A program made the translations under genes and the position numbers. The notes beneath the pieces are model-generated. The model saw only the letters and a program-made list of their open reading frames with translations. It did no database searches and was not told the origin of the DNA. Positions 21,076 to 53,200 of a DNA stretch of 64,000 bases are shown here, piece by piece. The number at the start of each line of letters is the position of its first letter. The first letter of the stretch is position 1. This DNA is from Anthoceros angustus (lineage: Eukaryota; Plantae; Anthocerotophyta). Location: positions 744,001-808,000 of the forward strand of contig MU008179.1 in assembly GCA_010909165.1 (NCBI GenBank). Reading direction: 5' to 3'.

Positions 21076-21666
21076 GGCTTGTGTGAACCGAAACTGGGCA
21101 CGACGCATGGTTGTGCCCTTGGAAGCAAGACAGGAGCATGTCATGTTTGAAGAGATGGCACACCGTCTTTCCAGCTTGCAGAACACGGGAAGGTTTTGGC
21201 CAGGTGATTGCTCCAGCTGATTGGCATTGCTCCAGCTAGTTCATGGTAGCTGGGAATTTTGTTCTCATGTCTTCAACTGTGGCTTGCAGTTGCATGTGCA
21301 CAACGAGAGGGATGCTGGAAGGCGTATGTGACATGTGTGACATGTGTGAGATATCTCCGGTGCCACGCTTCGCAGTGGTCAGACAAATCGTTGAACCAGG
21401 TGAAGCTTGTTTCTGAGCCTGGCACTGTCAGTTCTTTCGCAATTATGGATTTCGCATCTCATCATGTGATGAACGCAGAGCAATTCTGAATTCTCTGGAC
21501 CTTGAACGCGTTACATCAAGCGGGTGCCTGCGCCTTGAGCATGGAGTGAACCCCAGGGCATGAAAGTGAAGGCTTTGAACTCCCTGAGGCACATCTCGGC
21601 CCTGCAGAACATCTTATCGAGTACAAGACCCTTCACGGTATTGGCCTCTCAGTACTTGATAGCTGA

Positions 21667-29381: not shown

Positions 29382-30577
29382 TGTTGCGCTACTGGCTGCA
29401 TAGCGTTCAGGACACACGGGAAAACAGTGTGGATGGTGTTCACAGTAGCCCGCACCCAGGTCAAACCCACACGCGCAATGTTCACGTTAAGACTATTCAA
29501 AACTGCAAATGGCAAAAATTCATTTCACTTGGATGTAGGGCCCAAATCCGCTCATCCACACTTCCCAAGAGCTACATATCAAAACTCCGTCCTCTATGTT
29601 GGGATCCGTATGGCTGCTCCCAAGAACAAACATCAGCAATCCGCCTGCTACTGCGGATTGCTTACTATCTTATACTGCCTAAGTGCTTGGCGCGCCTTCT
29701 CTCGCCAAATCACAGGCGCCCGCGTAGCGCGCCTTGACACCCTCCTGAAAAGACGTGCGACGCCGCCCGTAAATGCGGCCCACAATAACTCCGCCGCAAC
29801 TACCGATTCGTGACCACCCTCAGAACTTACACACACACATGTTCAGCATCGCATGCATATCCATCATAAATCCCCACCATACATGCATGCCCATAAGCGG
29901 ACATACATACCATACTCTCGCACATCCATCCACCCACATACCCATTCACCGAACACAACACGGTGTCATGACATCCGTCAGCCATCGGGTCGCATAGCGT
30001 GACACACGGAAAAGCAGTGTGGATGGTGTTCCGCGATGCGCACCGGTCAAACCCACACGCGCAATGTTCACGTTAAGACTGTTCAAAACTGCAAATGGCA
30101 AAAATTCATTTCAGCTTGGATGTAGGGCCCAAATCCGCTCATCCACACTTCCCAAGAGCTACAGCTGTCAAAGGAAACTCCGTCCTCTATGTTGGGATCC
30201 GTATGGCTGCTCCCAAGAACAAACATCAGCAATCCGCCTGCTACTGCGGATTGCTTACTATCTTATACTGCCTAAGTGCTTGGCGCGCCTTCTCTCGCCA
30301 AATCACGCCGGTGCAGCGCCGCCGACACCCTCACGAAAAGGCGTGCGGCGCCGCCGACACCCTCACGAAAAGGCGTGCGGCCCACAATAACTCCGCCCGC
30401 AACTACGATCGTGACCACCCTCAGAACTTACACACACACATGTTCAGCATCGCATGCATATCCATCATAAATCCCCACCATACATGCATGCCCATAAGCG
30501 GACATACATACCATACTCTCGCACATCCATCCACCCACATACCCATTCACCGAACACAACACCAGGGTGTCATGACA
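29382..30577 (-). repeat. Two tandem ~590-bp terminal (LTR-like) units
   Basis: Units run from tgt(t/c)gcgctactggc to gggtgtcatgaca (29382-~29973 and ~29975-30577). The right-hand ~430 bp recur at 40490-40921 and ~42280-42743, and in part at ~45300-45672; the right-hand ~250 bp recur at ~31740-31990. Confidence 0.75.
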
Positions 30578-30820
30578 TCTGTCGCGCTACTGGCTGCATA
30601 GCGTTCAGGACACACGGGAAAACAGTGTGGATGGTGTTCACAGTAGCCTGCACCCAAGTCAAACCCACACGCAATGTTCACGTTAAGACTGTTCAAAACT
30701 GCAAATGGCCCCCCTGCCAAAGTAGCGGCTGCCATTGCCTGCTGAAGCAGCACTTTGGGCATTCATATCCCATAAAACCTTCTATAAAACCGCCGAAACA
30801 TATTGTCCTGAAGTTGGGGC

Positions 30821-31663
30821 TCAGAAGGTCGCTCGTGCTCTGTGCGTCCGTGGCCAATAAAGCTGCCACTCGCCGCTCTTGAGGTCGAAGTACTCATCCA
30901 CTTGTGCTTTTCCCAGCCGCTGCCGTTCTCTGGCTCGGTGGCGAGCCATCAGTTCTTCTTCCTCATCACTGTCAAGCTCTGTCTTGACTCTGGCCATCTG
31001 TGGTCCATTCAATCCATTCACGTAGTACTGCTTCTTGATACATTGGGTGCGTAAATAATCATCTACGTTGTTGTTGAGCAAGTACCAGCACTCGGTTGTG
31101 GGCTCATCCCATTCCAGAATTCCTGTCCGCAAGCAAGCGAATAGGCGATAGAAAGCTCTTGGGTAGCCTATGGCGTATCGTCCCGCTTTTTCCCGATGCA
31201 AATGACTAAGCCACACCTTCAAGCTGTGCAAGTCTGCAGGTTTCTCCTGTTGCTTATACACCAGAAACCCTTCCTTGGGACAGTGATCAAAACCCTGATG
31301 CATGAAGAGGTGATGTTCCAATTTGCGAAACGCCCCTTCACAGTAGCTAGTCCACACAAACGTTTGCCTATTCATCCCCCTTCCTGCAAGTTCAAACAAG
31401 TCCCTGTGGTCATATGGAAAATTTTCAACATTGCAAGTCTCATGATGAGACTCCACATACAACAAAAACGCCTGTAATTCCAGGAACATCTCCGGCCGTT
31501 CTGGTTTCCCAGGCTGATATTTGCGAACCAGAGGAGTGCGCCACTTATCTTCCCATGGCCGCTCAGGGAATTGGGGCACACTATGATGCATCCTGCGGAA
31601 ACAAGTCTTACATGTATGATCTGCTTCCAAGTCCATTTTCAAAGTACTACTACACCACACCAC
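30821..31663 (-). CDS. Extra 280-aa ORF of unknown function, downstream of pol and co-oriented with it
   Basis: Uninterrupted ORF with N-terminal HTCKTC...HH and an acidic/basic C-terminus. A second, indel-rich copy lies at ~32200-33020, contiguous with the region 3' of pol. Confidence 0.6.
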   Translation of the reverse strand: MVWCSSTLKMDLEADHTCKTCFRRMHHSVPQFPERPWEDKWRTPLVRKYQPGKPERPEMFLELQAFLLYVESHHETCNVENFPYDHRDLFELAGRGMNRQTFVWTSYCEGAFRKLEHHLFMHQGFDHCPKEGFLVYKQQEKPADLHSLKVWLSHLHREKAGRYAIGYPRAFYRLFACLRTGILEWDEPTTECWYLLNNNVDDYLRTQCIKKQYYVNGLNGPQMARVKTELDSDEEEELMARHRARERQRLGKAQVDEYFDLKSGEWQLYWPRTHRARATF

Positions 31664-32199
31664 GGTCTCCCGTTAGTCACGGTGTCACAATTCCCACCCG
31701 CCCTGCCAGCATGCAGGTGAAAACTTTGTCGATGGCTCATTTCTCGCCAAATCACGGCCCGCGTGGCGCCGCCGACACCCTCACGAAAAGGCGTGCGGCC
31801 GCCGTCGGCCCACAATAACTCCGCCCGCAACCTCTGGGTCGTGACCACCCTCGAACTTACACACACACATGTTCGATCGCATGCATATCCATCATAAATC
31901 CCACCATACATGCATGCCCATAGCGGACATACATACCATACTCGCATCCATCCACCACATACCCATTCACCGAACACAACACGGTGTCATGACATCACAG
32001 CCGCTTCATCGGGTGCATAGCGTTCGGACACACGGAAAAGCAGTGTGGATGGTGTTCCACGATGACCCAGGTCAAACCCACACACGCAATGTTCACGTTA
32101 AGGCATTCAAAGCGCAAATGGCCCCACTTGAAGTAGCGGCGCCATTGCTGCTGAGCGACACTTTGGGCATTCATATCCCATAAAACCTTCTATAAAACC

Positions 32200-33020
32200 G
32201 CGAAACATATTGTCCACGAAGTTGGGGCTCGAAGGTCGCTCGTGCTCTGCGTCCGTGGTCATAGCCACTCGCCGCTCTTGATTGTACTCATCCACTTGTG
32301 CTTTTCCCGGCGCTTCTCGATGGCGAGCCATCGTTCTTCTTCCTCATCATCAAGCTCTGTCTTGACTCGCCATCTGGTCCATTCAATCCATTCACGTAGT
32401 CGCTTCTTGATACATTGGGTGCGTAAATAATCATCTCGTTGTTGTTGAGCAAGTACCGGCCTTTCGGTTGTGGGCTCATCCCATTCCAGAATTCCTATCC
32501 GCAAGCAAGCGAATAGGCGATAGAAAGCTCTTGGGTAGCCTATGGCGTATCGTCGCTTTCCGATGTAAATGACTAAGCCACACTTTCAAGCTGCACAAGT
32601 TTGCAGGTTTCTCCTGTTGCTTATACACCAGAAACCCTTCCTTGGGCCAGTGATCAAAAACCTGATGCATAAAGAGGTGATGCTCCAATTTACGAAACGC
32701 CCCTTCACAGTAGCTAGTCCACACAAACGTTTGCCTATTCATCCCCCTTCCTGCAAGTTCAAACAAATCCCTGTGGTCATATGGAAAATTTTCGACATTG
32801 CAAGTCTCATGATGAGACTCCACATACAACAAAAATGCCTGCAATTCCAGGAACATCTCGGCCGTTGGTTTCGGTGATATTTGCGAACAGTCGCCACTTA
32901 TCTTCCCATGGCCGCTCAGGGAATTGGGGCACACTATGATGCATCCTGCGGAAACAAGTCTTACATGTATGATCTGCTTCCAAGTCCATTTTCAAAGTAC
33001 TACCTTCGCACACCACACCA
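32200..33020 (-). pseudogene. Frameshifted second copy of the extra ORF
   Basis: EMFLELQAFLLYVESHHETCNVENFPYDHRDLFELAGRG and GILEWDEPTTE are shared with 30821-31663. Confidence 0.7.
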
Positions 33021-33690
33021 CGGTCTCCTACCGTTAGTCACGGTGTCACAATTCCCACCCGCCCTGCTAGCATGCAGGTGAAAACTTTGTCAGTCGCTCA
33101 TTTACGGTGCCGCCAACCCGTCGGTGCTGACCAACCTCCAGTCACCCACAAGGACAACCGTCCTTACAATGTCGTGAGGTGGTGAGATCGTCATACGATG
33201 ATGACTCTCAGCTCTACCACGGTTAGAAGTTTGTCTTCACATCAGAATCGGAAGCGCGACCTCAATCCACGGATTTCCAGGTGAGCAGCAAATCACCTTG
33301 ATGCATGGATGCCATGCTTGCGATCAGTCGCTCACGATGGCAGATGCGCCAGTCGCGTGCTGTTGTTGTGTCCACGGGTGTCTGGTGATCACCTATCGCC
33401 AGCGTCGCCCACCTTGTGATGTCGGCCTGACCTCGCCGCGATGCACAATTTACATCTCCTGCCTATTATGTTTGCCTCACAAGTACCTTGGTGCGGAACC
33501 TCCTGTTCACGTTATCACTTCTACTCTGATAACCTAGTTCCTCGCCTGAACAATCATGACCCCGTTTCTGTGGTAGGGCTTCAAACACCCATACCCGCCA
33601 TATTGCCATCATCCTAAAAAAACCTTTTTACTTCTACACTCATGCGCCTGCACTGCCCGTGCGACTTGCCAACGGGCTTCTTGCACAGGT

Positions 33691-35150
33691 TTACCCTATT
33701 GGGTCGTGGTTGATGAACTTGCGACACTCATGGGCCACTCGCTTGGCCCCCCAGCCACTTGATTCGCTTGTGGCGTTAGCACACCGGTGACAAAACCATT
33801 CGCCTTCTGGAACTGTTTTGAGTGGCGGTCGTAAGCAAAAGATATGATACCCTCCGTTGCATTTGTCGCAAAGTAACATCAATTCAGGATCAGTAACGTG
33901 ACCGCAGAACCCACAAGGCAGATCAATCGGTGGTTTCCATGCTTGCGGTTGTGTCCTTGTGTCAAGATTGGGCAAATGGCACGGTGCCAAATGCCGCATG
34001 TGCTCTTTGCACCGACGCCCATCTTGTCCTTCCAACTCAATCACCCCTTGCTCACCGACATGTACTACTCGCAAGATCAAACGTCCAGTGCTCACATCTA
34101 AAGTAGTTGAGGGTCGATGTTGCAGGTAGACAAAGTCACCCACCTCAAACTTCCTTGCTTTGGGTTTCCATGAGCCTCCCCTGGTGAATGCATACCAAAG
34201 TTGGTCCCGATGTTGGGCTATAGCAAGATTATCCATGGCCATCGGCATCACACGTTGAAACAGCCTTGCTCTTGCTTGCAATTCCGAAAAACATCCCGTA
34301 GGATCCTGTGCCCAGTCCACAGGCCTGGAATAAGTGTCTGCACTATGTTCGGCATGACTGCATTTCTGCCAAACATGATATAGTAGGGACTGAAGTTACC
34401 AAGTGCGGCTTGCACACTGATTCGGTATCCTAGAGCCACATAGGGCAATAGCTCGTCCCAGCAACTGGGTTCAATCTCCATACAATATTTACGCAGAGAG
34501 TCCTTGAAAGTCTGGACTAGACGCTCCGCCAACCCATCAGCTTGAGGGTGATCCCGGGAGGTTTGCCTGTGATCTATCAGGCTTCGATCCAACAGTGATT
34601 GAAACTCTCCTCGAAATTCATTGCCTTGGTCTTAACACTCAAAGACAACTACCGATCACGAGAACACATTGCAAACGCCTGCGGTATATTGCGAACTTCG
34701 ATCGGAAGGCCAACTCCACCCACTTGAAATGTTCGATCATCAACATACAATGTCTGTTGCCTGCACGGTGGTAGTTCGGGCATTAGATCGGCACTATCTC
34801 AAGAAAAGTCCTCGATGGGTACGAATGCAACACCACGTCTTGGCTGGTGAATCTGGCCTTTACTGCATCACACGCGGCACATTTGGCTACCACCTTTTCA
34901 ACGTCTGCATACATACCCGACCAAAAGTATGCGTTCTTCAACATATGATGCGTTCGTTTCACTCCAAAGTGGCCAAGCGTGACATGTACCTTGGTCACCA
35001 ATTGCTTCCTCTCCCCTATGGGTGGTACTTCCTTGAGTACCCCACGATCCGTTACCCACACTTTACCGTTTTCATAGGTATAATGAATGATTTTTCGTTG
35101 TAATCTTTGTAGCGCTGAGGCATCCATACCAGTGACCTGTCCATCCCGTA
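33691..35150 (-). CDS. Gypsy integrase with a C-terminal PHD finger (frameshifted)
   Basis: HVTLGHFGVKRT...YFWSGMYADVEKVVAKCAAC (HHCC), HPQADGLAERLVQT, KFEVGDFVYL, then CGFC...LLCDKC...YHIFCLRPPL...GEWFCHRC at 33781-33915. Confidence 0.9.
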
Positions 35151-35329
35151 GCAGCTGTATAGCTTGCTCATTTTTCCATATGTCTCTTCCTCCCTCAGCC
35201 AGTTGCCTTCCATCTTCCTGCTCTGTGGACATCAGGGCCATATAATAACTGGGCATGATTTGAGTGAGTCCAAAGTCCTGCCTTCCTCCAGTCACATCTC
35301 CTTTGTCCGTTTTCGGCATTGAGATGTAC

Positions 35330-36640
35330 TTTACCCGCTCGATGCACAATCTGCATATCATACTCTGAAAGTAAAAGCACCCATCTGGCAAGTTTCCCAC
35401 TCAATTTCATGTTTGTCATCAGCGGTGAAGGGCTGATGATCCGTGATCAACAAAGCTCACCAAACAAATACACTCAAATGTAAAACCGCCCAAATCAGCT
35501 GCATTCCCTTCATACGATGAGTAGTTTGCCTCCGCAACATTGTTGGACCTGCTCGCATATGCGACAACGCTCTTTCCTTCTTCATCCGTCCAAGACAGCC
35601 TCAAGCCTCCATCTGGTATAAGACAAAAGGCTTATCAAAATGAGTCCTTTTGAGCATTGGCCTTTCCGCTAGCTGGTTCTTCAACTCCTGCCAAGCCTGT
35701 TCCTGTTCTTGTCCCCATCGCCAGGGCACTCCCTTCTTGAGCAATTCATACAGCACCTTGCATATGCTGCTCATGTTTCGGACAAAACGGCGATAGTAAT
35801 TGACAAGCCCCAGGAATGCCCTTAAGGCAGCAATGTCTCTAGGTCGGGGCATGAGATCAATTGCCCGTACCTTGGCCAGCTGAGGCAACATCCCACCTGG
35901 AACTATCTTATGCCCCAAGTACTCTATCTCCTTGTATGCAAACTTGCATTTCTTTGGGTGTGCCTTTAACCATGATTTGGCCAATCTTTGCAACAGAATC
36001 TCCAGGTGTTGGAGATGCTCTTCCAGGCTGTTACTGAACACCAGGATGTCATCGATGTAACATCTTACAAACGATGTCCTTCAAATCACCCACACCGAAA
36101 ATAAATGGATGCGTTTTTCAAACCAAATGGCATTGTTTCCCACTCCCAAAGCTGGTCCTTACCCCAGAACGCTGTCTTGCACTTGTCTCTTTCTTCGATG
36201 ACGATTTGATTGAAACCTGACCGGAAATCCAATGTAGTGAAATACTTGGCCGCCCAATGGCATCAAAAATTTCATCCGGTGTCGGCATGGGATATCGTTC
36301 CATAGGTGTCACCTCATTCAGAGCACGATAGTCTCCACACATCCTCCTGTCTTTCCATTCGCCATTCTCGTCCTTCTTTAATGGCAACACAGTGGCCGCA
36401 GCATACTGCGAAGTGGACTTTCTAATTAGTCCGGCTGCTGCCAGTTCCTTGCATCTCCTATCCACAATGTCCCACTCCATGGGACTCAGCCTGTGCCTTC
36501 GTCTGAACACTGGTTCGTTGGTGGTAGTGGTGATCTTGAATTTGATACGATCATACCGCCCTAGCTCAGCCCAACTAAATGCGAAGGTGTGTCGGTTTTG
36601 CTGTAGCATATCCCGAATCTTTCGTTGATCGGCCTCCTCT
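35330..36640 (-). CDS. Gypsy reverse transcriptase and RNase H (frameshifted)
   Basis: RRMCGDYRALN...YPMPTPDEIFD, YIDDILVFS at 36059, KKCKFAYKEIEYLGH, LRAFLGLVNYYRRFV, VAYASRSNNVAEANYSSYEG, KLARWVLLLSEYDMQIVHRAGKVH. Confidence 0.92.
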
Positions 36641-36839
36641 AACTCTTTGCATATCTGCCATCCATGTGTTGAGCTCACGCTGTCTCTGTTCTCTTGTGTT
36701 GTCGCAGTCCCTGCGGTGTTCGCCGTACAACCTCCTTTGTGACACTGCATTGGAAACTCGCCTTCCTCAAGCAATAATAGGTGCGCCCCACCTTCCGCCT
36801 TGCACATACCCATTTGTGTGGCCAGGCCCACATTCAGCA

Positions 36840-37740
36840 ACCATTGCAAGGTGTCGATCAAACGCTTGACCCGACACAGCGATATGTTTGAAATGCCCGC
36901 GTGATGGTCCGTCATCAAATCCCATGGCCCGTTCGCACTCCATCACTGTGGGCTCACCCACCTCATTTCCAGCGAGATCCACCACGGTGCCGTCCCCGCC
37001 TCTCCGAAAGGCATAAGACTGAGCAGTCCTTACGACTGTGGGCCAGGCCCTTCTTGGCTTCCCAACCTTGTTTACTGGAAAGCGCGGTGGTTTATCCATC
37101 TTCTGCACCGGCTGTGAGCGTCTGCCCTTTTCTAAGATTTCATCCACATATCGTTTCTCTGGCTTGGTCAATTCACGATGTTGCCTAAGAACCTCTACAC
37201 TGGTCACGTTTGTCCAGAAACTTCGCACATGGTGGGCGTATGAGCCCGTCTGTACAGCATCAATGATGAATTCCTCTCCTATCCAACTTCTGAGCTGTTC
37301 ATAGCTCTTCTTGACATGCTCACGTTTGTCGAATGCTCCGCAAACGTTCTCTAGCATGTACCAGCAAGTGGGGTTGATCAACTGTACTTCCCTCAGAATC
37401 CTGATCACTTCTGCAGCCACTTCCACACCGTCACCCTTTCCACAACCGCTCGAAAATGTCGCATTCCCATCCCGAATCGATATGGACCGGGCACGATTGC
37501 TTCACGTCTCCCCACCAATCGGCGTCGGGGCAGCTGCTCGACATCCCTTCACCGCCTCCATGCTTAGTAACTCGGGATACGCCCTTTGCATCCTGATAAT
37601 CCTGGACTTGGCTACCGCATGTGCCTTCTCGTCTACTTCAACACACGTGTATTTCCTCACCCGCATTCCACTCTTCAATATTGCTTCAAGCCCGCTGCTG
37701 ATCCCTGAACACAGCTCCATGAGATGTATGCCTCGCTCGT
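36840..37740 (-). CDS. C5 cytosine DNA methyltransferase domain embedded in the Gypsy pol region (frameshifted)
   Basis: Motif I IHLMELCSGISSG (~37730-37690); II KYTCVEVDEKA; IV GWEC (37472-37461); VI YMLENV (ENV at 37351-37343); VIII IDAVQTGSYAHHVRSFWTN; IX EPTVMECERAMGF; X GQAFD (~36870). Canonical order. Confidence 0.82.
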
Positions 37741-38204
37741 CACGTTGCCACCGAATCACATCCGTATTGATCCTCAAGGCGGTACTGTCTAGAGCTCTCA
37801 ACCTGGGCAAATAGTTTTCCGGACACACATCAGTGGCCTGCCACACCTTAGACTGGCTTCGTCGGGTGAGCTCTCGGGCCAAAGCTTTTGATAGCATGGG
37901 GGTTTTCCTTACATACATGCACTCACTGCTTTGACGCACCTCTTGCACCTCTTCCCGCATGAGGTCCTGAGTTTCTTCCCACACCAATTGCCTGTGCACA
38001 ATGTCAGCCGAACAAGCCGTGAATGCAATCATGCTATCTGATTTTTCAGCATGTCGCCTCATATCAAGTGGTATCCTGGCCACTTGTGTGAAATCCCCAT
38101 CTCGCCACCGTGGCCTATAAAACGCTTCTGAGTGCAGCGGATCTACCCCCATTGCTGGGCCGTGCGTGGCATCAGCCCCAAGTAGCACATCATAGTTTCT
38201 TGCG

Positions 38205-38996
38205 TTAGACACCAAGCAGTGAACTTCGATAACAGAGGCATCCTTTGTGCTCTATGCGTACTGGCTCACGAGTCATTCCCATCACTCGTTCCTTGGTTCC
38301 TGCAGATGTGGTGATGTGCACTTCACATGGCTTAAGCTTATCCCCATATAGCTGGAGAGCCTTCTGTACCCGTGCCCCGAGCAATACCGGGTCCGCACCT
38401 GTATCTACCAACACATATTCTGGAGCAAAACCGTTGACCGTTACCTCCCGACCTTGATTCTTGACCATGGCAATGCCTCCTTTGCCCCGTGCCGCTGGCT
38501 TCAAGTGGTCCCCGCGTAGGCTGACGCATCCAGACACCTGGTCGCGTCCTGCAGATTCCTTTTGTATCCAGGCCTTCATGGCCTGCTTAAATGGTTGCGT
38601 CTTGACTCCCAGATCACGCAAGCTCATCACGGGCACATCCATCACCTTCTCGAGCATAAGTTCAGCACTGGGTGATTTCTCTTCAGACGTCCGTTCCTCC
38701 TGGTCTTCTTCATACTGCCTAAAAGATTTGGGCATCTTGAGCTGATTCCTTTCCTCACCCTTCTTTCTTCGCACCGCTCCACCCAAGTCGATACTAGCCC
38801 GTTCATCCACAGGCGACCTCGTGGCCATTAGCGCATACACCTCTGGATCCGAATCATAATCCTCAGTGGTAGCAACCGAACTTCCCCCTGTGCTCACACT
38901 CATGGCTAACTTTTCTTGCAGCCTGTGCACCTCACTGAGAAGCGCTTTCCGGGTGTACCCCCTTGTTGATTTTGCCTTGTCAGACATCCGTTCCAC
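38205..38996 (-). CDS. Gypsy gag-pol linker and aspartic protease
   Basis: YVLVDTGADPVLLG (DTG at 38405-38397), continued in the next frame by NYDVLLGAD. Confidence 0.8.
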   Translation of the reverse strand: MERMSDKAKSTRGYTRKALLSEVHRLQEKLAMSVSTGGSSVATTEDYDSDPEVYALMATRSPVDERASIDLGGAVRRKKGEERNQLKMPKSFRQYEEDQEERTSEEKSPSAELMLEKVMDVPVMSLRDLGVKTQPFKQAMKAWIQKESAGRDQVSGCVSLRGDHLKPAARGKGGIAMVKNQGREVTVNGFAPEYVLVDTGADPVLLGARVQKALQLYGDKLKPCEVHITTSAGTKERVMGMTREPVRIEHKGCLCYRSSLLGV

Positions 38997-39074
38997 AGCC
39001 CCCTTTGGCTTGAATTCAGGATGAGCCTGCCAGCATGCTGCCTCCGTATGTCCGGTTTTGGCACACGTTCGACA

Positions 39075-40425
39075 CTACTCCTTCTCCTTCGCCCCCCCAA
39101 TTCGATACTCACACTCGAAGGCCTTGTGCGGCCCCCTGCAGCGAAGACATTTCACCGTTGCTTTGTTGGTGGCCGCACTATTGGCCGCGTGTTCTTTGGC
39201 TGGGGAATTCCGCAGCGTGTTCACCTGAGCATGCTCGCGCTGCATAGTTCTTCCTTGAAACCTTGGGTTGTTCATGGCATGCTGCTGTCCTCTGACCAGA
39301 TTATGCTCCTCCCAGTAAGCACTGGTCACCGCGTCGCCCTTCATGACCCTTTCAGCCATCTCATAGGCTTGTTCTAACTCGTAGTCGGCACCGTGCATCA
39401 TGTGCAGGAAATTAGCAATCACCCTTCTTTGTCTTCCTGGAAGGGTAGCTATGTAGATCTGGGCGGCTTCCCGCATCGTCTTCACATGCGTGTCTTTCAC
39501 CAGTTGTCTTAACCTCAAATAGGCGGATTTGAGAGGTTCGTTGGGCTTGATGGTAAATTTTGACAGCTCCTGAATCTTCTCTATGGAAGATACCGGAAAC
39601 GTTTCTGCGAATTTGGAGAACATTTCATCCACCAAGTACGTAATGGCATCAGTTTGTGTGGAACTGGACGCCTCCTCCACTTCATCTACTTTCAACATCT
39701 TCTTGGCCATTCTTGCCCTGGCCAGAGTCCGCGCATCCTGCAAGATCTGATCCTTGCAGTCACGGTAGCAAGTCAGTGCCTCTCCTGCAAGAAACGTGCT
39801 CATCTTTCTCAACGCCATTTCGGGTGTGAACTCGGACTTGTATTTGAGCACCATCTCATCGATTGCCCACCTGAACTTTTCCTCAAAGTCAGCCAGCGAC
39901 ATGCCGCCATGTCTGCCGGTGAACACATCATTTTTACTAGGTGCTATCTCGTATTCCATTCGGACTCCACCACCACTCTCTTCAAATGCTATGGATCGGA
40001 TAGGACTATACTCCCTCTCAAACTGACCACTTGGCCTATGGATTGAAGGATATTGGGTGACGGGACTGCGAGCTTCCTGAATAGGAGTAATCTCGTTTGT
40101 CCACCCAGACCACAGAAACACCATTACCTTATCAATCCCTTCCTCTGCGAGAAACTATGTATGGCATTTCATCTAACTTAGTGTTGGCTCCCCCTTCCGT
40201 CCAGTCCGCCAACCATGACAGTTTGTCGATCACTTCATCCCACAACTTCTGCCACAAATATGCGGGTTCTAGTTCTGCTAAGGTAGCTAAGTGCAGAATG
40301 GACCGACTCGCATAAAACAACACAAAGTAGTCTACAGCACTCTCATCACAGTTCACCATTGACTTATCTGTATGTTCCACCGTCCTTCTGTGACGTCCTT
40401 GAGTTCCCTTCACAAAGATCTTCAC
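39075..40425 (-). CDS. Gag
   Basis: 349-aa ORF (39075-40124) with LSKFTIKPNEPLKSAYLRLRQL and a zinc knuckle CLRCRGPHKAFEC. An upstream co-oriented ORF (40132-40425) is probably the frameshifted N-terminus. Confidence 0.75.
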
Positions 40426-40921
40426 CGCTTACCAAGCCCTTTTGTTGCACGCCGCGGATCCAGCTCAAGGATTGATGTGCAAAATTCATTTCAGCTTGGA
40501 TGTAGGGCCCAAATCCACTCATCCACACTTTCCAAGAGCTACAGCTATCAAAGGAAACTCCGTCCTCTATGTTGGGATCCGTATGGTCGCCTAAGAACAA
40601 ACATCGCAATCCGCCATCATGGATTGCTTACTATCTTATCTTGCCTAAGTGCTTGGCGCCTTCTCTCGCCGAATCACAGCGCGCCGACACCCTCCTCGAA
40701 AAGACGGCGACGCGCAGAATGCGGCCCACAATAACTCCGCCGCAACTACCGATTCATGACCACCCTCAGAACTTACACACACACATGTTCAGCATCGCAT
40801 GCATATCCATCATAAATCCCCACCATACATGCATGCCCATAAGCGGACATACATACCATACTCACGCACATCCATCCACCCACATACCCATTCACCGAAC
40901 ACAACACCGGGTGACATGACA

Positions 40922-43900
40922 TTTGCCCTAAGCGAAACCCCATTGAGCAAGGTGTAAGGGCGCTCCCTAAATGGAAGGAACCCCACAGCTACAAGTTGAA
41001 AGAGAGCAAGCCAGAGGATGGACCAAGCCAAGGCGAAAACGCATCGCGGTGGAAAAAGTTGCTGGTGCGATGCGGAACGCCTGAATACTAGGTCGAGCCG
41101 GCCGGAACCCCCTTTCCCGAGCAAGAGCGGAGACGAGCCCGAGTGGGCCTAGGAATGAAGGAATCCCGGAGGAGGGCCAATTGCACCGCCTGTCGCTTCT
41201 CCGTGAGGGACGCCTGAAGCCCCTAGAGCCCAACCTCGGAAAGCGAGGAAAAAGATGGCATGGCACCCTCGCCTTGACGATAAAGAGTCCTGGCTAATCT
41301 TAGTGAGGCTGCATGGGAAAAGTCCCTCTTCAACGCGATAGGAGAAATAAGTGAGGGAGGAGTAAGTGAAGATAGGCGTTCGGACGAATGGGTCCTTAAA
41401 CGCGTTTGGCCATCCCGGCCCATACGGTGAGAAGTAGGGTGACATGGATGAAGGGTAGAATAACCGTAATCCGGGCGGATGGACGCGCAGAGGCGGGTGA
41501 CCTCGGGTAAGCAATCATCCCTCGGACGGCGGAAGGTGTTGGAGTGCAAGAACCAGTGGCACAAACAAGTCATTCCCTTGGGAACGGACCCCATATTGCA
41601 ACAACACGGGACTGGTGCACGCCCGGCTGGCCATCAGCGAAAGTAGCGCCACAGACTGACGGCTGCAAATTTCACAAGACAGATTGAGCGTAAACCTTTC
41701 AATTATCGTACAAGGTGTTCTGCTTTTGCAGTTCTTTCTTCAGCAGATCGCGCAGCTGCGATTGCTGCCGATATTGTGCTTTTCCTACATAAAAGCAAAA
41801 ACCATCACATACAATAGATGGGTCGGATGGACTATACCCTCTCAAACCGACCACTTGGCCTATGGATTGAAGGATATTGGGTGACGGATCGAGCTTCAAT
41901 AGGAGTAATCGCTTTGTCCACCCGCACAAAACACCATTACCTTATCAATCCTTCCTGAGAAACTATGTATGGCATTTCATCTAACTTAGTGTTGGCTCCC
42001 CTTCCGTCCAATCACCAACCATGACAGCTTTTTTGATCACTTCATCCCACAACTCTCCACAAATATGGGTTCTAGTTACGCTAAATGCGTAATGGACCGA
42101 CTCATAAACAACACAAAGTAGTCTACAAGACTCTCATCAGCCCACCATGGACTTATCTCAGATGTTCCACCGTCCTTCTGTGACGTCCTTGAGTTCCCTT
42201 CACAGCATCTCGCCTGGCTTACCAGCAGCCCCTTTTGTTGTACGCCGCCGCCAGATCCAGCTCAAGGGATTGCTGATGTGCAAAAATTCATTTCAGCTTG
42301 GATGTAGGGCCCAAATCCACTCATCCACACTTTCCAAGAGCTACAGCTATCAAAGGAAACTCCGTCCTCTATGTTGGGATCCGTATGGCTGCTCCCAAGA
42401 ACAAACATCAGCAATCCGCCTGCTACTGCGGATTGCTTACTATCTTATACTGCCTAAGTGCTTGGCGCGCCTTCTCTCGCCGAATCACAAGCGCCCGCGC
42501 GGCGCGCCTTGACACCCTCCTGAAAAGACGTGCGACGCCGCCCGTAAATGCGGCCCACAATAACTCCGCCGAATTCACCGATTCATGACCACCTCGAACT
42601 TACACACACATGTTCAAAGATCGCATGCATATCCATCATAAATCCCACCATACATGCATGCCCATAAGCGGACATACACCATACTCACGCACATCCATCC
42701 ACCCACATACCCATTCACCGAACACAACACCGGGTGACATGACATTTGCCCTAAGCGAAACCCCATTGAGCAAGGTGTAAGGGCGCCCTAAATGGAAGCC
42801 ATCGGGTTCGAGGTAGTGTCCGACGGTTGCACAGCTGCGCAAAAACATCGGAGCCCAAGAGTCCTCTCGGGAAGCAATTTGCGTTGATGGGAATAGGGTA
42901 ACGAGATGATGGGGGACCTATATTTCACTCATCCATGCACTTTAGGCACATATGACTCATCGCATCATGTTCGCAGCAAGAACTACCATGGTGAAATATT
43001 CATTTCATCCATCGTCCAACTCCACCTCAAACACGATCCCCTGAATTTAGGTTACCATGGTCGACAAGAGGGTGTACACGTCAAGAGGGACAGGTTTTGC
43101 AATACACTCCAGGTTAAAATAGATTCATCACTCACTTAAAGCAACACATCACAGGAAAGCATGGAAGGAACCCTACAGTTAAGTTGAAAGAGCAAGCGGA
43201 GGATGGACCAAGCCAAACGCATCGCGGTGGAAAAAGTTCGTGCGATGCGGAACGCCTGAATACTAGGTCGAGCCAGAAGCCAGGAACCTGCCCCCTTTCC
43301 TGAGCAAGAGCGGAGACGAGCCCGAGTGGGCCTAGGAATGAAGGAATCCCGGAGGAGGGCCAATTGCACCTGCCCGTACTGTTTCTCCAGGAGGGACGCC
43401 TGAAGCCCCTAGAGCCCAACCTCGGAAAGCGAGGAAAAAGATGGCATGGCACCCCTCGCCTTGGACGATAAAGAGTCCCTGGCTAATCTTAGTGAGGCCT
43501 GCATGGGAAAAGTCCCCTCTTCAACGCCCGCGATAGGAGAAATAAGTGAGGGAGGGAGTAAGTGAAGATAGGGCGATTTCGGACGAGAATGGGTCCTTAA
43601 ACGTTTGGCCATCCCGGGCCTGTACGGTGAGAAGTAGGGTGACATGGATGAAGGGTAGAATAACCGTAATCCGGGCGGATGGACGCGTAGAGGCGGGTGA
43701 CCTCGGGTAAGCAATCATCCCTCGACGACGGAAGGTGTTGGGTACGAAACGGGCACAAACGGAACAAGTCATTCCCTTGGGAACGGACCCCATATTGCAA
43801 CAACACGGATCGGTGCACGCTGGCCATCGAAGTAGCGCCACGATCGACTGCAAATTTCACAAGACAGATTGAGCGTAAACCTTTCAATTATCGTACAAGG

Positions 43901-46900
43901 TGTTCTGCTTTTGCAGTTCTTTCTTCAGCAGATCGCGCAGCTGCGATTGCTGCCGATATTGTGCTTTTCCTACATAAAAGCAAAAACCATCACATACAAT
44001 AGATGGGTCATGCTTACGACAAACATAGACAAACCTTACGACGAACCTTTGTTTGTGTTTGAGCGCGTGGAGCGACCTGTAAAGTTCTTTGTCAGCATGA
44101 TCCTTAAGTGTTGTTGGTGAAAGGTACCCTGGTCGGCGCGCAAAACAAAAGGAGAGGATCCCAAACGCCACTTGCGGGTCTCCTTGTTGAGGAAGGTCGT
44201 CGATGTGCGCCAAATCCTCAGCCAAAGCCGCGTCCTGATAAATCGGGACACCGAGAACCTGAAGCCCCGGTGGAGAAGCAATATCCCCTTCCCGATACCG
44301 GAGAAAAGGCATAATGCCAGAGGGAGACCAAACCTTGCACTTGATGATTTTGACCTTCAAACCGAGGTGGGGGAGCTCTGAAGCGAAGAAATCAAATGCC
44401 ACTTTAACCTTGTCTCCAGGCCCGAGGATATGGGTATCGTCGACCACAGACGGATACAAGCATTCCCACACCGAAGAGGCAGTAGAAGACAAAGCCCTGA
44501 AATGCGCCATGGCAAAGAGAGCACCTCCCAAAGGGTCACCTTGCCTAGTGCCCGTCGCCGAGCTCAGCACAGAGACCCCTTCCACCGAGGGGCCATGCTG
44601 ATAATAGAGGTTGGAAGGAGACCCATAAAAGGAGCGGACAAAGGGAATAAGGCTGGCCAACTGCCCACCTGCGTTCTTGAGCTCGTCGAAGATGGCCGAC
44701 TGTGAGACAGAGTTGAAGGCATTCTCCACGTCGACCTGAAGAGTAATCGAATCAGGGTGGGTCTTGAGAACCGCCTCCACCCCAAAAGCCACAGACTCGC
44801 AGCCCCTCGGCATAGCAATCCCAAACTGATGAGGACTAAGATGGGCCTGGAACTGCTCCCGGAGCTGGATGGCAGTACTATGGCCAATAAGCCGCAGGAA
44901 CGCCTCCCCGACAACGATAGGACGCACCCCTGGGGTGGGCTTCTCCATCGCCAAGAACCTGCTCGCACCCAACACTTGAGAGATCCGAGGGGAAGTCTCC
45001 CCCATGCAGCCAGCATCGGAAGAAAGAGCTCGGAAAACCGAATTTGAGAAGAAGTTAACGTTATCGACTCCTTTCGCTCCTGGCGTAGCAAAACATGGGG
45101 ACGAGGCCGGTTTGAACCTCGGTATCCAGAGAAGTTTTCCTCTGCTTTTCCAAGTGAGAAAATGGAAGCCATCGGGTTCGGTAGTGTCCGTGGCGTTGCA
45201 CAGTACCAGCAAAACATCGCCAGCCCAAGAGTCCTCTCGGGAAGCAATTTGCGTTGATGGGAATAGGGTAACGAGATGATGGTGGACCTATATTTCACTC
45301 ATCCACACTTTCCAAGAGCTCACTATCAAAGGAAACTCCGTCCTCTATGTTGGGATCCGTATGGGCTCCAAGAACAAACATCGGCAATCCGCCATCTGCG
45401 GATTGCTTACTATCTTATCTTCTGTGCGCGCCTTCTCTCGCCGAATCACACACGCGCCTTGACCCTCCAAAAAGGCGTGCGGCGCCCGTAATGCGGCCCA
45501 CAATAACTCCGCCGCGCCTTCGATTCATGACCACCCCGAACTTACACACACATGTTCGATCGCCATCCATCATAAATCCCACCATACATGCATGCCCATA
45601 GCGGACATACATACCATACTCACGCATCCATCCACCCACATACCCATTCACCGAACACGGGTGACATGACATTTGCCCTAAGCGAAACCCCATTGAGCAA
45701 GGTGTAAGGCGCTCTAAATGGAAGGAACCCCACTACAAGTTGAAAGAGCAAGCGGAGGATGGACCAAGCCAAACGCATCGCGGTGGAAAAAGTTCTTGAT
45801 GCGATGCGGAGCTGAATACTAGGTGAGTCGAGCCGGGGAACCCGCCCCCGAGCAAGCGGACGAGCCCGAGTGGGCCTAGGAATGAAGGAATCCCGGAGGA
45901 GGGCCAATTACTGCCTGTCTGTTTCTCCGGAGGGACGCCTGAAGCCCCTAGAGCCCAACCTCGGCGAAAGATGGCATGGCACCCTCGCCTTGGGCGATAA
46001 AGAGTCCTGGCTAATCTTAGTGAGGCCTGCATGGGAAAAAGTCCTCTTCAACGCGATAGGAGAAATAAGTGAGGGAGGGTAAGTGAAGATAGGGCGATTT
46101 CGACGAATGGGTCCTTAAAGCGTTTGGCCATCCAGGGCGCGGTGAGAAGTAGGGTGACATGGATGAAGGGTAGAATAACCGTAATCCCGGATGGACGCCA
46201 GCGTAGGCGGGTGACCTCGGGTAAGCAATCATCCCTCGGCGGCCGGAAGGTGTTGGAGTGCAAGCGAACAAAGTCATTCCCTTGAACGGACCCCATATTG
46301 CAACAACACGGAGTGCACGCCTGGCCATCAAATGGCGCCCGGTACGGCTGCAAATTTCACAAAAGCAGTTGGCGTAAACCTTTCAACAAGGTGTTACGCT
46401 TTTGTTCTTTCTTCAGCGGTCCGCGACTGCGATATTGTGCTTTTCCTACATAAAAGCAAAACCATCACATACAATAGATGGGTCATGCGACAAACATAGA
46501 CAAACCTTACGACCTTTGTTTGTGTTTGAGCGTGGAGCGACTGTAAAGTTCTTTGTCAAGATGATCCTTAAGTGTTGTTGGTGAAAGGTACCTGTCACAA
46601 AAACAAAAGGAGAGGATCCCAAGCCACTTGCGGGTCTCCTTGTTGAGGAAGGTCGTCGATGTGCGCCAAATCCTCAAAAGCCGCGTCGATAAATCGGGAC
46701 AACTGAAGCCCCGGTGGAGAAGCAATATCCCTTCCGACCGAAAAGGCATAATGCCGGAGGAGACCAAACCTTGCACTTGATGATTTTGACCTTCAAACCG
46801 AGGTGGGGAGCTGCAGGCGAAGAAATCAAATGCCACTTTAACCTTGTCTCCGGGCCCGAGGATATGGGTATCGACCACAGACGGATACAAGCATTCCCAC

Positions 46901-47700
46901 ACCAAGAGGTGAGAAGACAAAGCCACAAATGCGCCATGGCAAGAGAGCACCTCCCAAAGGGTCACCTTGCCTAGTGCCCGTGCCGAGCTCAAGAGAGACC
47001 CCTTCCACCGAGGCCATGCGATAATAGAGGTTGGAAGGAGACCCATAAAAGGAGCGGACAAAGGAATAAGGCTGGCTGCCCACTGCGTTCTTGAGCTCGT
47101 CGAAGATGGCCGATGTGAGAGAGTTGAAGGCATTCTCACGTCGACTGAAGAGTAATCGAATCGTGGTGGGTCTTGAGAACCGCCTCCACCCCAAAAGCCC
47201 AGACTGCGATAGCAGCAATCCCAAACTGATGAGGACTAAGATGGGCCTGGAACTGCTCCCGGAGCTGGATGGCAGTACTATGGCCAATAAGCCGCAGGAA
47301 CGCCTCCCCGACAACGATAGGACGCACCCCTGGGGTGGGCTTCTCCATCGCCAAGAACCTGCTCGCACCCAACACTTGAGAGATCCGAGGGGAAGTCTCC
47401 CCCCTCGCCACAGCGGCATCCAGAAGAAAGAGCTCGGAAAAACCGAATTTGAGAAGAAGTTAACGTTATCGACTCCTTTCGCTCACAAGCGTGGCAAACA
47501 TGGGGACAGGGAACGTCGGTTTGAACCTACGGTATCCAGCAAGAAGTTTTCCTCTGCTTTTCCAAGTGAGAAAATGGAAGCCATCGGGTTCGAGGTAGTG
47601 TCCGGCCGGCGTTGCCTGGTACACTGCAGCAAAAACATCTGCCTGGAGCCCAAGAGTCCTCTCAGGGAAGCAATTTGCGTTGATGGGAATAGGGTAACAG
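40922..47700 (-). mobile_element. Several partial, interleaved copies of a 5'-truncated CRE-like non-LTR element, Gypsy terminal/gag pieces and host flank
   Basis: CRE segments at ~40922-41830, 42744-42900, 43160-45275 and 45673-47700. Gypsy pieces at ~41830-42743 and 45300-45672. Flank copy at ~42905-43160 matches 47700-47960. Confidence 0.8.
43884..45212 (-). CDS. CRE-like reverse transcriptase (best-preserved copy, probably inactive)
   Basis: LAMEKPTPGVRPIVVGEAFLRL, HQFGIA, DVENAFNS and GTRQGDPLG. The catalytic motif reads SVVDD instead of Y-x-DD. Confidence 0.85.
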   Translation of the reverse strand: MLVLCNATDTTEPDGFHFLTWKSRGKLLWIPRFKPASSPCFATPGAKGVDNVNFFSNSVFRALSSDAGCMGETSPRISQVLGASRFLAMEKPTPGVRPIVVGEAFLRLIGHSTAIQLREQFQAHLSPHQFGIAMPRGCESVAFGVEAVLKTHPDSITLQVDVENAFNSVSQSAIFDELKNAGGQLASLIPFVRSFYGSPSNLYYQHGPSVEGVSVLSSATGTRQGDPLGGALFAMAHFRALSSTASSVWECLYPSVVDDTHILGPGDKVKVAFDFFASELPHLGLKVKIIKCKVWSPSGIMPFLRYREGDIASPPGLQVLGVPIYQDAALAEDLAHIDDLPQQGDPQVAFGILSFCFARRPGYLSPTTLKDHADKELYRSLHALKHKQRFVVRFVYVCRKHDPSIVCDGFCFYVGKAQYRQQSQLRDLLKKELQKQNTLYDN

Positions 47701-48316
47701 ATGATGGACTGGACCTATATTTCACTCATCCATGCACTTTAGGCACATATGACTCGCACTGCATCATGTTCGCAGCAAGAACTACCATGGTGAAATATTC
47801 ATTTCATCCATCGTCCAACTCCACCTCAAACACGATCCCCCTGAATTTAGGTTACCATGGTCGACAAGAGGGTGTACACGTCAAGAGGGACAGGTTTTGC
47901 AATACACTCCGGGTTAAAATAGATTCATCACTCACTTAAAGCAACACATCACAGGAAAGCATGGAAGGAGGCAGTAGTTGCGAGGCAGCAATTGTAGGAG
48001 GTTGCCAGGAATACTTGTGTACACGGTTCTCCATAGCCCACTTTTTGTTGGAAGATGCTTCGTGATTGCAAGCATTACCGCTGGCAATCCAGCTTGTGAT
48101 AAGCTAGTTCTTAGGAGAGAACGATTTCCTACCCTGCGTCTGTATTTTTGCCCCTTTAGAAAGGGCGGTCTTATGGGAACATGATTGTGGTAACTAGGCC
48201 ATAGATAAGCCTCTGCTTCCACGGGTCAGGGCGACATTTTCTGACGAACTAGCCTGGAGCTGATCGAATGGACAGTAAAACGTCATGAAGAACTTGAAAG
48301 GTGCTGCGTTTTGTAT

Positions 48317-50247: not shown

Positions 50248-53200
50248 ATGGCAGCGATAGCCAGCTGTGGCTGTTTCACTCCCCGCTGCTTGCACAATAC
50301 ATTGCAGCGTTCAGCTGGCTCTCATCAAGGCAACGCAAGTTCATCCTCTTGCCAATTTCTGCCTCGTCCCTGGGGCGTGCGAGAAGGCGGTTTGACTCGG
50401 AAGAATGGGGCCTGGAAGATTCTGGTGTCCGGAGGACGGAATGAGGGTGGTAGACGGGAGATTAAGCTGAATGAGGACGACATGATGACTCTGGAGTTCG
50501 GTCGATTGCTGGGGGAGTCTCGTGAGACCACATTGTCGAAGGTGAGGGGACGAAGAATCCCAGGTGGGGTTGTGCTGAGATTCCTCTGACTGGATGGGCA
50601 TTTGGCACAAAATGTGGCTTTGCTCACCTTGTTGCTGAGGAATCCGTTGGTTGCAACAGATTCTCCGGTCGAAGGCTGATCCAGATGCTACATTTTTGGA
50701 TGTTGAAGAGGCTTTGCTGAAGGGGAAGCCCGCTAGGCCCGTCAAGGCTGTTAAGGCTCAGGAGACGCAGGAGATTATACCTCCTCCCGGTATACCGAAA
50801 CGTCCCCAGGGTGGTGCTGGGTCCGATGGGAGTGTGCCTGAGCTGTTGTCGCGACCACCGAGGCCTAGAGCTGCCCAAGAGGCTGAGGGGAAGGGACAGG
50901 GGCAGGGGCAGGGCATTCAGATAGTGCGGCCGGTGGGAAAGAAGCTGAAGGCTGAGAAGCCTAAGGTTGAGGATGCTGATTACGGGCAGTTGATACGGAA
51001 GCCGATTGTTGTAGGTCCCAAAGTAGCACCTGTAGAGGTGATAGCTCCTATGACGTTGCGGAGAGCAAAGGAAACTTCTGCTGCAGCCCAATCCCTTACA
51101 GCTTCTAGTATGTTACGGAAACCAGTTCCCAAGCCCACAACTGCAGAGTCTGGGAACGAGGTATCAACTTCTGATGGGAAGGATCCAGCTAAGGCTGCAA
51201 CTGTAGCGGAATCACTTGAAGCCTCGGGTGTCTTACGGAAGCCCTCTGTTGCTAAGTTGGCTCCCGGACCAAGTGTGACACAAAATGTAGTCTCTGATAA
51301 GGATGGTCTAGCTGAATCCAGTGCTTCCACCATTCAAGCTAAGGCTCCAACTGTAGCTGAATCACTTGAAGCCTCAGGTGTCTTACGGAAGCGCTCTGTC
51401 GCTAAGTTGGCTCCCGGACCAAGTGTGAGACAAGATGTAGTCTCTGATAAGGATGGTCTAGTTGAATCCCGTGCTTCCACCATTCAAGCTGCAACTGTAG
51501 CGGAATCACTTGAAGCCTCAGGTGTCTTACGGAAGCCCTCTGTTGCTGAGTTGGCTCCCGGACCAAGTGTGAGACAAGATGTAGTCTCTGATGAGGGTGG
51601 TCCAGCTGAATCACTTGAAGCCTCAGGTGTCTTACGGAAGCCCTTTGTTGCTGAGTTGGCTCCCGGACCAAGTGTGACACAAAATGTGGCTTTGCTCACC
51701 TTGTTGCTGAGGAATCCGTTGGTTGCAACAGATTCTCCGGTCGAAGGCTGATCCAGATGCTACATTTTGGATGTTGAAGAGGCTTTGCTGAAGGGAAGCC
51801 CGCTAGGCCCGTCAAGGCTGTTAAGGCTCAGGAGACGCAGGAGATTATACCTCCTCCCGGTATACTGAAACGTCCCCAGGGTGGTGCTGGGTCCGATGGG
51901 GAGTGTGCCTGAGCTGTTGTCGCGACCACTGAGGCCTAGAGCTGCCCAAGAGGCTGAGGGAAGGGACAGGGGCAGGGGCAGGGCATTCAGATAGTGCGGC
52001 CGGTGGGAAAGAAGCTGAAGGCTGAGAAGCCTAAGGTTGAGGATGCTGATTACGGGCAGTTGATACGGAAGCCGATTGTTGTAGGTCCCAAAGTAGCACC
52101 TGTAGAGGTGATAGCTCCTATGACGTTGCGGAGAGCAAAGGAAACTTCTGCTGCAGCCCAATCCCTTACAGCTTCTAGTATGTTACGGAAACCAGTTCCC
52201 AAGCCCACAACTGCAGAGTCTGGGAACGAGGTATCAACTTCTGATGGGAAGGATCCAGCTAAGGCTGCAACTGTAGCGGAATCACTTGAAGCCTCGGGTG
52301 TCTTACGGAAGCCCTCTGTTGCTAAGTTGGCTCCCGGACCAAGTGTGACACAAAATGTAGTCTCTGATAAGGATGGTCTAGCTGAATCCAGTGCTTCCAC
52401 CATTCAAGCTAAGGCTCCAACTGTAGCTGAATCACTTGAAGCCTCGGGTGTCTTACGGAAGCGCTCTGTCGCTAAGTTGGCTCCCGGACCAAGTGTGAGA
52501 CAAGATGTAGTCTCTGATAAGGATGGTCTAGTTGAATCCCGTGCTTCCACCATTCAAGCTGCAACTGTAGCGGAATCACTTGAAGCCTCAGGTGTCTTAC
52601 GGAAGCCCTTTGTTGCTGAGTTGGCTTCCGGACCAACTGTTAGACAAGATAAGGATAGTCCACTTGAATCCAGTGCTTCCACCATTCAAACCAAGGCTGC
52701 AACTGTAGCGGAGTCACTTGAAGCCTCTGGTGTCTTACGGAAGCCCTCTGTTGCTGAGTTGGCTCCCGGACCAACTGTCAGACAAGTAGTCTCTGATGAG
52801 GGTGGTCCAGCTGAATCCAGTGATTCTACCATTCAAACTTCTGGTTTGTTAGAAAAGCCCTCAAGTGCTCCAACAGCTGCAGAAAGGACGGACCAGCAAG
52901 TCTTTGCTTCTGGTGAGGAGAAATCAGCTTCTGTGTTTTCCTTGCCAGGTGATCCACCTCCAAAACCTTCTTCGCCATTAGATCCGAGGTCTTCTTTACA
53001 ACTTAGACCGAAGTCTTTTGTGTCCACTCTGAAGCCCCAGATTCGTGCGGCTAATGTTCTGGTGGAGTCCAGTAGTGGTTCTATTTTGTCTGGAGAGGTT
53101 GAAGGGATTGGTAACGAGCCTGTCACGGATAGGCTTTTATCCAGCTCAGTCGGTGAAACTGCTCCAGAACTAGATCAGAGGGAGGCAAGTACTGTGGAGG

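Follow-up and report, generated by a model that had tools for sequence, protein, structure and literature searches.

A probable decayed DNMT3-type cytosine methyltransferase domain in a Ty3/Gypsy-type retrotransposon of Anthoceros angustus

The DNA analysed here, called the window throughout, is a stretch of 64,000 nucleotides from Anthoceros angustus (GenBank assembly GCA_010909165.1, contig MU008179.1, positions 744,001 to 808,000), numbered from its first letter. A Gypsy-type retrotransposon lies on its minus strand at approximately 39926-33754, with the domain order gag, protease (PR), DNA methyltransferase (DNMT), reverse transcriptase (RT), RNase H (RH), integrase (IN) and PHD finger. 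An earlier, sequence-only reading of the window had proposed that the element carries its own C5 DNA methyltransferase between protease and RT. Our analysis makes it very probable that this segment is a decayed DNMT3-type C5 cytosine methyltransferase domain within a Ty3/Gypsy-type retrotransposon, one that is to be placed in the streptophyte Gypsy-DNMT3 lineage.

The methyltransferase domain occupies 37750-36835 (minus strand, as do all the coding parts of the element described below) and contains seven motifs in canonical order: motif I (LMELCSGISSG, 37723-37691), II (CVEVD, 37645-37631), IV (SGWEC, 37475-37461), VI (MLENV, 37357-37343), VIII (DAVQTGSYAHHVRSFWTN, 37261-37208), IX (ECERAMGF, 36940-36917) and X (SGQAFD, 36874-36857). 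All seven were found where the sequence-only reading had placed them. One frame, running down from 37759, carries motifs I and II, a stop after GGET, and then motifs VI, VIII, IX and X. Motif IV is in a second frame, and the IDTLQWLL that follows motif X is in a third, which continues into RT. Motif IV of the window reads Glu-Cys and not Pro-Cys, motif VIII reads AHHVR (HxR) against AHRxR in the family, and the Phe of motif I is replaced by Cys.

These parts fit a profile built from 46 homologues (A3). The N-terminal piece with motifs I and II (37523-37750) matches profile positions 5-80 at 60.8 bits, and its frame stops at 37502-37504. The C-terminal piece (36857-37429), which holds motifs VI, VIII, IX and X together with a family-specific insert between VIII and IX, matches positions 125-304 at 186.2 bits over 37429-36905, collinear with the first. 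Between the two, and in a frame other than theirs, PVHIDSGWEC (37461-37490) with the putative catalytic Cys falls collinearly at profile positions 100-109, a match too short to be significant by itself. The domain ends in IDTLQWLL (36835-36858), after a frameshift at about 36858. The same motifs occur upstream of RT on a 9.2-kb metagenome scaffold, L001 (word-indexed protein search, one fragment), where an uninterrupted counterpart of this end follows motif X.

The remainder of the element was delimited with Pfam and by tblastn alignment to P0240, an intact homologous polyprotein of 2358 residues. The gag region (39009-40124) includes an open reading frame (ORF) at 39075-40124 with a weak Retrotrans_gag match (E 0.038), and P0240 residues 61-417 are collinear with it at 39926-39009. 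The aspartic protease, with the sequence VDTGA, lies at 38253-38996 in an ORF of 38205-38996; residues 184-241 match Asp_protease_2 (E 3.6e-4), and P0240 residues 652-725 align at 38474-38253. RT and RNase H (35300-36681) are spread over four alternating frames, P0240 residues 1335-1809 aligning in frames -2, -1, -3 and -1, and the ORF at 35601-36041 matches RVT_1 (5.8e-8) and RT_RNaseH_2 (5.3e-6). According to the ORF list and Pfam, the RT and RNase H ORF pieces span 36918-35419 and the integrase ORFs 35400-34248. The zinc-binding H2C2 and catalytic core parts of the integrase are at 34335-35184 (Integrase_H2C2 9.5e-17; P0240 residues 1866-2160), followed by a C-terminal extension (33754-34329; P0240 residues 2163-2353, 49% identity) that ends in the PHD finger at about 33781-33915 (Pfam PHD 1e-11). 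The Ty3/Gypsy Pol order of PR, RT, RNase H and IN is present, with RT_RNaseH and Integrase_H2C2 domains of Gypsy type both in Pfam and in the P0240 alignment.

Seven homologous domains compared with the whole 64-kb window by tblastn had the DNMT locus as their sole match (E 1e-30 to 2e-44). A profile made from the C-terminal pieces of the window and L001, searched against 1.84 billion cluster representatives, returned 796 proteins at E<=1e-3, 425 of them at E<=1e-10. Many of the 796 are polyproteins of 1000-3200 residues, and several carry RVT_1, RT_RNaseH, integrase and PHD domains. A search with the Pfam DNA_methylase model (PF00145), which had been suggested as a check on the sequence-only reading, gave a divided answer: the window ORF pieces had no match at E<=0.1, but homologues scored 30-58 bits (P0015 45.5, P0035 46.1, P0073 58.4, P0240 32.5) against a cut-off of 22 bits. 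Since PF00145 misses the window pieces, their link to the methylase family runs through homologues that pass the Pfam threshold.

Comparison with structures in the PDB depended on the depth of the query. A single-sequence search placed sulfotransferases first at E of about 0.05 and DNMT3B only at E 1.4, a misleading ranking that was overridden by the family-profile matches. With two-sequence profiles, the N-terminal piece matched the start of the catalytic domain of DNMT3A/B/C (E 0.0024) and the C-terminal piece matched DNMT3 at E of about 0.1. The A3 profile matched DNMT3A at 2.4e-23 (85.8 bits) in three collinear segments spanning the catalytic domain, with DNMT3C and DNMT3B at about 1e-22, DRM at 4.5e-13 (52 bits), M.HhaI at 2.4e-9 (39.7 bits) and DNMT2 at about 6e-5 (25 bits); DNMT1 was absent from its PDB matches at E<=0.01. 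An AlphaFold2 model of residues 182-509 of the homologue P0011 (mean pLDDT 95.3, pTM 0.93) was compared with the PDB by Foldseek, and the top 50 matches were all DNMT3A/B/C, with E values down to 5e-20 and TM scores of 0.71 on the query and 0.79-0.83 on the target. By the profile ranking and Foldseek, DNMT3 resembles the domain more closely than DRM, DNMT1, DNMT2 or the bacterial enzymes do.

The missing Pfam match and the sulfotransferase ranking are what could be expected if the motifs were a chance likeness, or belonged to some other Rossmann-fold methyltransferase rather than to a C5 DNA methyltransferase. We give this explanation almost no credence, as the window pieces match the family profile at 186 and 61 bits, the homologues pass PF00145, and the profile and fold searches arrive at DNMT3 with E values of 2e-23 and 5e-20. 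The P0240 alignment, the PDB profile search and Foldseek together bear out what had been proposed, a Gypsy-type element in which PR and RT are separated by a C5 methyltransferase that is DNMT3-like and non-permuted.

Mammalian DNMT3A, 3B and 3C (PDB 2qrv, 6u8p, 8tci) are the best profile and fold matches and are collinear with the family over the entire catalytic domain. The two share the 'C-x-D-L-S' flavour of motif IV and the 'AHR-x-R-x-F/W-x-N' pattern of motif VIII. They are only about 20% identical, however, and the retroelement family adds a conserved insert of about 45 residues between motifs VIII and IX, often has Glu instead of Pro before the Cys, and has neither PWWP nor ADD, being embedded in a polyprotein with a separate PHD finger. 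The plant enzymes DRM1/2 (PDB 4onj, 7l4c) also have a DNMT3-related catalytic domain and came second to DNMT3 when the PDB was searched with the profile, but their motifs are circularly permuted, with VI-X before I-V, whereas the window runs I, II, IV, VI, VIII, IX, X. The DRM matches were limited to profile positions 6-144 and fell at the C-terminus of the DRM chain. On the evidence of its canonical order the domain is not a captured DRM, in agreement with the sequence-only reading.

Domain mapping of 281 collected proteins revealed two architectures, RT-RH-DNMT-IN-PHD and PR-DNMT-RT-RH-IN(-PHD). These correspond to two clades in DNMT-domain trees (FastTree; IQ-TREE, SH-aLRT 97), which were built from domains of the family and carry a midpoint root only. 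The first clade, with the DNMT between RNase H and integrase, comprises the chlorophytes Haematococcus, Monoraphidium, Scenedesmus, Chromochloris and Cymbomonas. The second, with the order PR-DNMT-RT-RH-IN-PHD (45 rows), includes the window, L001, Closterium, Klebsormidium nitens (GAQ93235.1 and GAQ80425.1), Marchantia polymorpha (OAE24016.1) and Calypogeia fissa (CAM6104272.1). The best identity of the window DNMT to any of the collected sequences is about 42%. The sequence-only reading had taken the element for a separate, new land-plant lineage; this has to be given up, because the window stands in the same clade as the retrotransposon DNMT3s of K. nitens. The DNMT occupies two positions in pol in these sister clades, between PR and RT in streptophytes and between RNase H and IN in chlorophytes, and it must therefore have moved within pol or been captured twice.

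Frame breaks run all through the window copy, which is the only one in the 64 kb, so that a fragment or pseudogene of a host DNMT3 gene, inserted in a single Gypsy copy and not encoded by the element, might account for what is seen. The intact relatives speak otherwise: P0240 has PR-DNMT-RT-RH-IN-PHD in one open frame of 2358 residues, and P0035 (2188 residues) has the same order, PR-DNMT-RT-RH-IN, in one open frame (Pfam). K. nitens, Closterium, Calypogeia and L001 have this architecture as well, and the window is collinear with P0240 straight across the PR-DNMT and DNMT-RT junctions. A one-off insertion is consequently regarded as highly improbable, and the same architecture in intact polyproteins and in liverwort assemblies upholds the view that the domain belongs to the element. 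The Calypogeia fissa assembly contains a near-complete element in the same order with few frame changes, at a locus where no LTR (long terminal repeat) pair was found, and Marchantia contains a truncated element. Both liverwort copies (OAE24016.1 and CAM6104272.1) are unannotated in the public assemblies.

The 46 sequences of the A3 profile are about 40% identical. None of them departs from the catalytic Cys, from the Glu of ENV or from the second Arg of motif VIII, and at least 90% retain the Asn of ENV and the first Arg of motif VIII. As these catalytic residues are conserved, the pattern argues that intact members would be enzymes. Pro-Cys, as a rule invariant in motif IV, gives way to Glu-Cys in roughly half to two thirds of the family. 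Of the domains with a readable motif, 106 of 166 in clade A and 13 of 30 in clade B have the Glu, among them uninterrupted polyproteins of more than 2000 residues, and Pro-Cys and Glu-Cys forms interleave in both clades. The replacement had been listed among the signs that the window copy may be dead. As a mark of a dead copy it was rejected, given that Glu-Cys is commoner than Pro-Cys in intact members and the Cys is invariant.

The same replacement raises the question of whether the domain of intact members writes DNA 5-methylcytosine (5mC) at all. Glu-Cys might instead mark RNA methylation, covalent or tight binding of DNA without turnover, or a structural role in the preintegration complex. 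The frequency of Glu-Cys in both clades and the conserved insert of about 45 residues, which DNMT3 does not have, lend this some weight, as does the finding that the SymbioLINE DNMT was inactive on DNA in yeast, with RNA suggested as its substrate (de Mendoza 2018, Nat Commun 9:1341, PMC5890265). The conserved catalytic residues, the interleaving of the two forms within each clade, and a fold that is that of a full DNMT3 catalytic domain (homologue model, Foldseek) point the other way. We consider such a departure from DNA methylation unlikely, and favour a DNMT3-type C5 cytosine methyltransferase.

The window copy itself is dead: it is unable to make a DNMT protein and is a fossil without function. 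This is so because of frame changes across the DNMT and pol, among other lesions that include the loss of about 13 codons and the change of a motif VIII Arg to His. P0240 is collinear with 39926-33754 only in eleven pieces, with at least eight frame switches across pol. The window DNMT is distributed over three frames, with breaks at about 37505-37530, 37456-37461 and 36858. The suspicion that the copy may be dead was right on account of its frame changes, and not on account of Glu-Cys. The region between motifs IV and VI had also been described as shortened, and profile positions 81-124 are indeed spanned by only 31 codons, but most of the deficit of about 13 codons lies just upstream of motif IV.

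Repeats surround the element on both sides. Upstream of gag, self-BLAST detects two tandem repeat blocks of about 1.8-2.2 kb (39991-41824 and 41818-44009, 87-90% identity), possible LTR material, and downstream of the PHD end it detects further tandem repeat blocks (29382-33103). The sole part common to both flanks is a module of about 470 bp (29509-29974 and 30095-30578 against 40475-40922 and 42276-42745, 88-93%). Just upstream of gag, the string TGG..GG.TGGACAAA is common to the window (about 40095-40115, minus strand) and L001 (about 1985-2006, plus strand) and translates as W-S/A-G-W-T-N among the listed ORFs. This string may be the primer-binding site. The DNA that encodes P0240 (L002:1-18357; ENA ERZ25067493, contig ctg159469_5x_c) is a perfect head-to-tail repeat with a unit of 8261-8262 nucleotides and 100% identity. 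Each unit contains one polyprotein, a 123-residue ORF, about 1.2 kb of non-coding DNA and no internal LTR pair, and L002 could stem from a circular molecule, like a one-LTR circle, that was read through more than once, or from a tandem array.

Several observations weigh against the assignment of the window to a DNMT3-type methyltransferase of the Gypsy-DNMT3 lineage. PF00145 does not recognise the window pieces, as described above, and the Glu before the catalytic Cys could mean an altered DNA methylase activity, or none. The modelled structure is that of P0011, which is 35% identical to the window, rather than that of the window copy itself. The branch of the window is long (1.16), and its place inside the second clade is not settled by the tree. 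Self-BLAST of both flanks defined no clean LTR pair around the element. The observed/expected CpG ratio of the element, 0.71, equals the window average and thus gives no element-specific methylation footprint.

Elsewhere in the window, an intronless gene for a PPR-E-DYW protein is located at 22295-23578 on the plus strand (Pfam DYW_deaminase 1.4e-36), with the signature HAE and not HSE and the C-terminus GDHS and not DYW. An ORF at 9690-11183 (plus strand, 69% GC) combines AMPK1_CBM with CBS domains, like the beta-gamma regulatory subunit of plant SnRK1 (KIN-beta-gamma-like), and a 502-residue ORF overlies it on the opposite strand. The PPR-E-DYW gene and the KIN-beta-gamma-like gene fit a host of land-plant type. 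A repeat of about 1.7 kb with 100% identity (19040-20759 and 21163-22876, offset 2117-2123 nucleotides) extends across the PPR gene region and reflects either tandem duplication in the very recent past or an error of the assembly. Further repeats with 100% identity are at 14449-14965 and 15275-15789, 50888-51187 and 51958-52257, and 44814-45003 and 47214-47403. A second RT ORF (43884-45212, minus strand; RVT_1 5.8e-12) is not similar to the Gypsy-DNMT3 polyprotein and is contained in a block that occurs twice, at 43161-45311 and at 45718-47740 (88%). It probably belongs to another retroelement beside the 5' side of the Gypsy element. Tandem arrays of a repeat of about 150 nucleotides, eight copies in two blocks, occur at 51184-51739 and 52254-52842.

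The closest described system is KnitGypsy-Dnmt3 of K. nitens (de Mendoza 2018, PMC5890265), which likewise has a non-permuted DNMT3-type domain in a Gypsy-type Pol. Its protein GAQ93235.1 has zf-CCHC, protease and DNA_methylase in the window order and belongs to the same DNMT clade. The window differs in that its host is a land plant and its copy is dead, and in motif IV, which is GWEC against GFPC in K. nitens. A PHD finger ends the window integrase, and the K. nitens protein used for comparison is partial. The terminal repeats of the K. nitens element are reported as DIRS-like, and the K. nitens case was described as an independent acquisition in that lineage (PMC5890265). The occurrence of the family in liverworts and Closterium, and of a sister clade in chlorophytes, points to a family that would be much older and wider than such an acquisition. 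Later papers name the lineage 'streptophytes (Gypsy-DNMT3)'.

Other retroelements share single traits with the one described here. SymbioDIRS-Dnmt3 of Symbiodinium (PMC5890265) also has a DNMT3-type domain in its Pol, with de novo CG methylation in yeast, but its carrier is a DIRS (tyrosine recombinase) element of dinoflagellates, and its authors regard it as an independent acquisition. Chromoviruses are Gypsy elements with a chromatin-reader module on the integrase, which in their case is a chromodomain. Gypsy-7a_cRei of Chlamydomonas (Plant Cell 2022, PMC9940879) is a Gypsy element with a PHD finger, but the finger is drawn before the integrase and there is no DNMT, whereas the window has its PHD C-terminal to the integrase and a DNMT. 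Our literature search found Gypsy-DNMT3 described only for K. nitens, and no land-plant or chlorophyte description. The element is a decayed representative, in a land plant, of a lineage and a kind already known. What goes beyond the literature found are the land-plant copies, the constant PHD partner, the different places that the DNMT takes in the pol of the sister clades, and the frequent Glu-Cys loop.

The PHD finger recurs alongside the DNMT throughout both clades. Its closest PDB chain is the PHD domain of ATXR5 (E 6e-16), followed by CHD4, KDM5A/B PHD1, UHRF1, BAZ2A/B, DPF, BHC80 and AIRE. Most of these PHD fingers read the histone H3 tail with unmethylated Lys4 (H3K4me0). By analogy with them, the PHD finger of the element may be a reader of H3K4me0.

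For intact relatives, a mechanism can be proposed. The DNMT would be made within the Pol polyprotein and would methylate cytosines in the complementary DNA (cDNA) of the element or at its new insertion, and the integrase-linked PHD finger might guide the integration complex to chromatin outside promoters in which H3K4 is unmethylated. PHD and DNMT would then work together as a reader and a writer, much as host DNMT3 joins an ADD domain to its catalytic domain. The DNMT copies of K. nitens are reported to be under purifying selection, de novo CG methylation in yeast has been reported for a Symbiodinium retrotransposon DNMT3, and the roles considered possible are a disguise of the cDNA as self, a shield against deamination, and self-limitation (de Mendoza 2018, PMC5890265).

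A broader proposal, which we regard as possible but doubtful, is that the lineage spans all green plants and goes back to one ancient capture that preceded the separation of chlorophytes and streptophytes. It further holds that the host has a large, perhaps recently active family whose intact copies, equipped with a DNMT3-type writer and an H3K4me0-type PHD reader, place 5mC on their cDNA or where they insert. They would thereby add to the methylation of the host, or imitate it, in a lineage in which host DNMT3 is variably retained. If this were true, the origin would be an ancient capture rather than an isolated Klebsormidium event.

Transposons are usually seen as targets of methylation by the host, a view that a retrotransposon with its own de novo DNA methyltransferase inverts; few cases have been described, in green plants only that of Klebsormidium. 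The presence of the lineage in land-plant genomes (the Anthoceros window, Marchantia and Calypogeia), the regular pairing of DNMT with an integrase-linked PHD finger and the chlorophyte sister clade indicate that it is older and more widespread than published. The family would provide natural material for asking what a transposon gains by writing 5mC.

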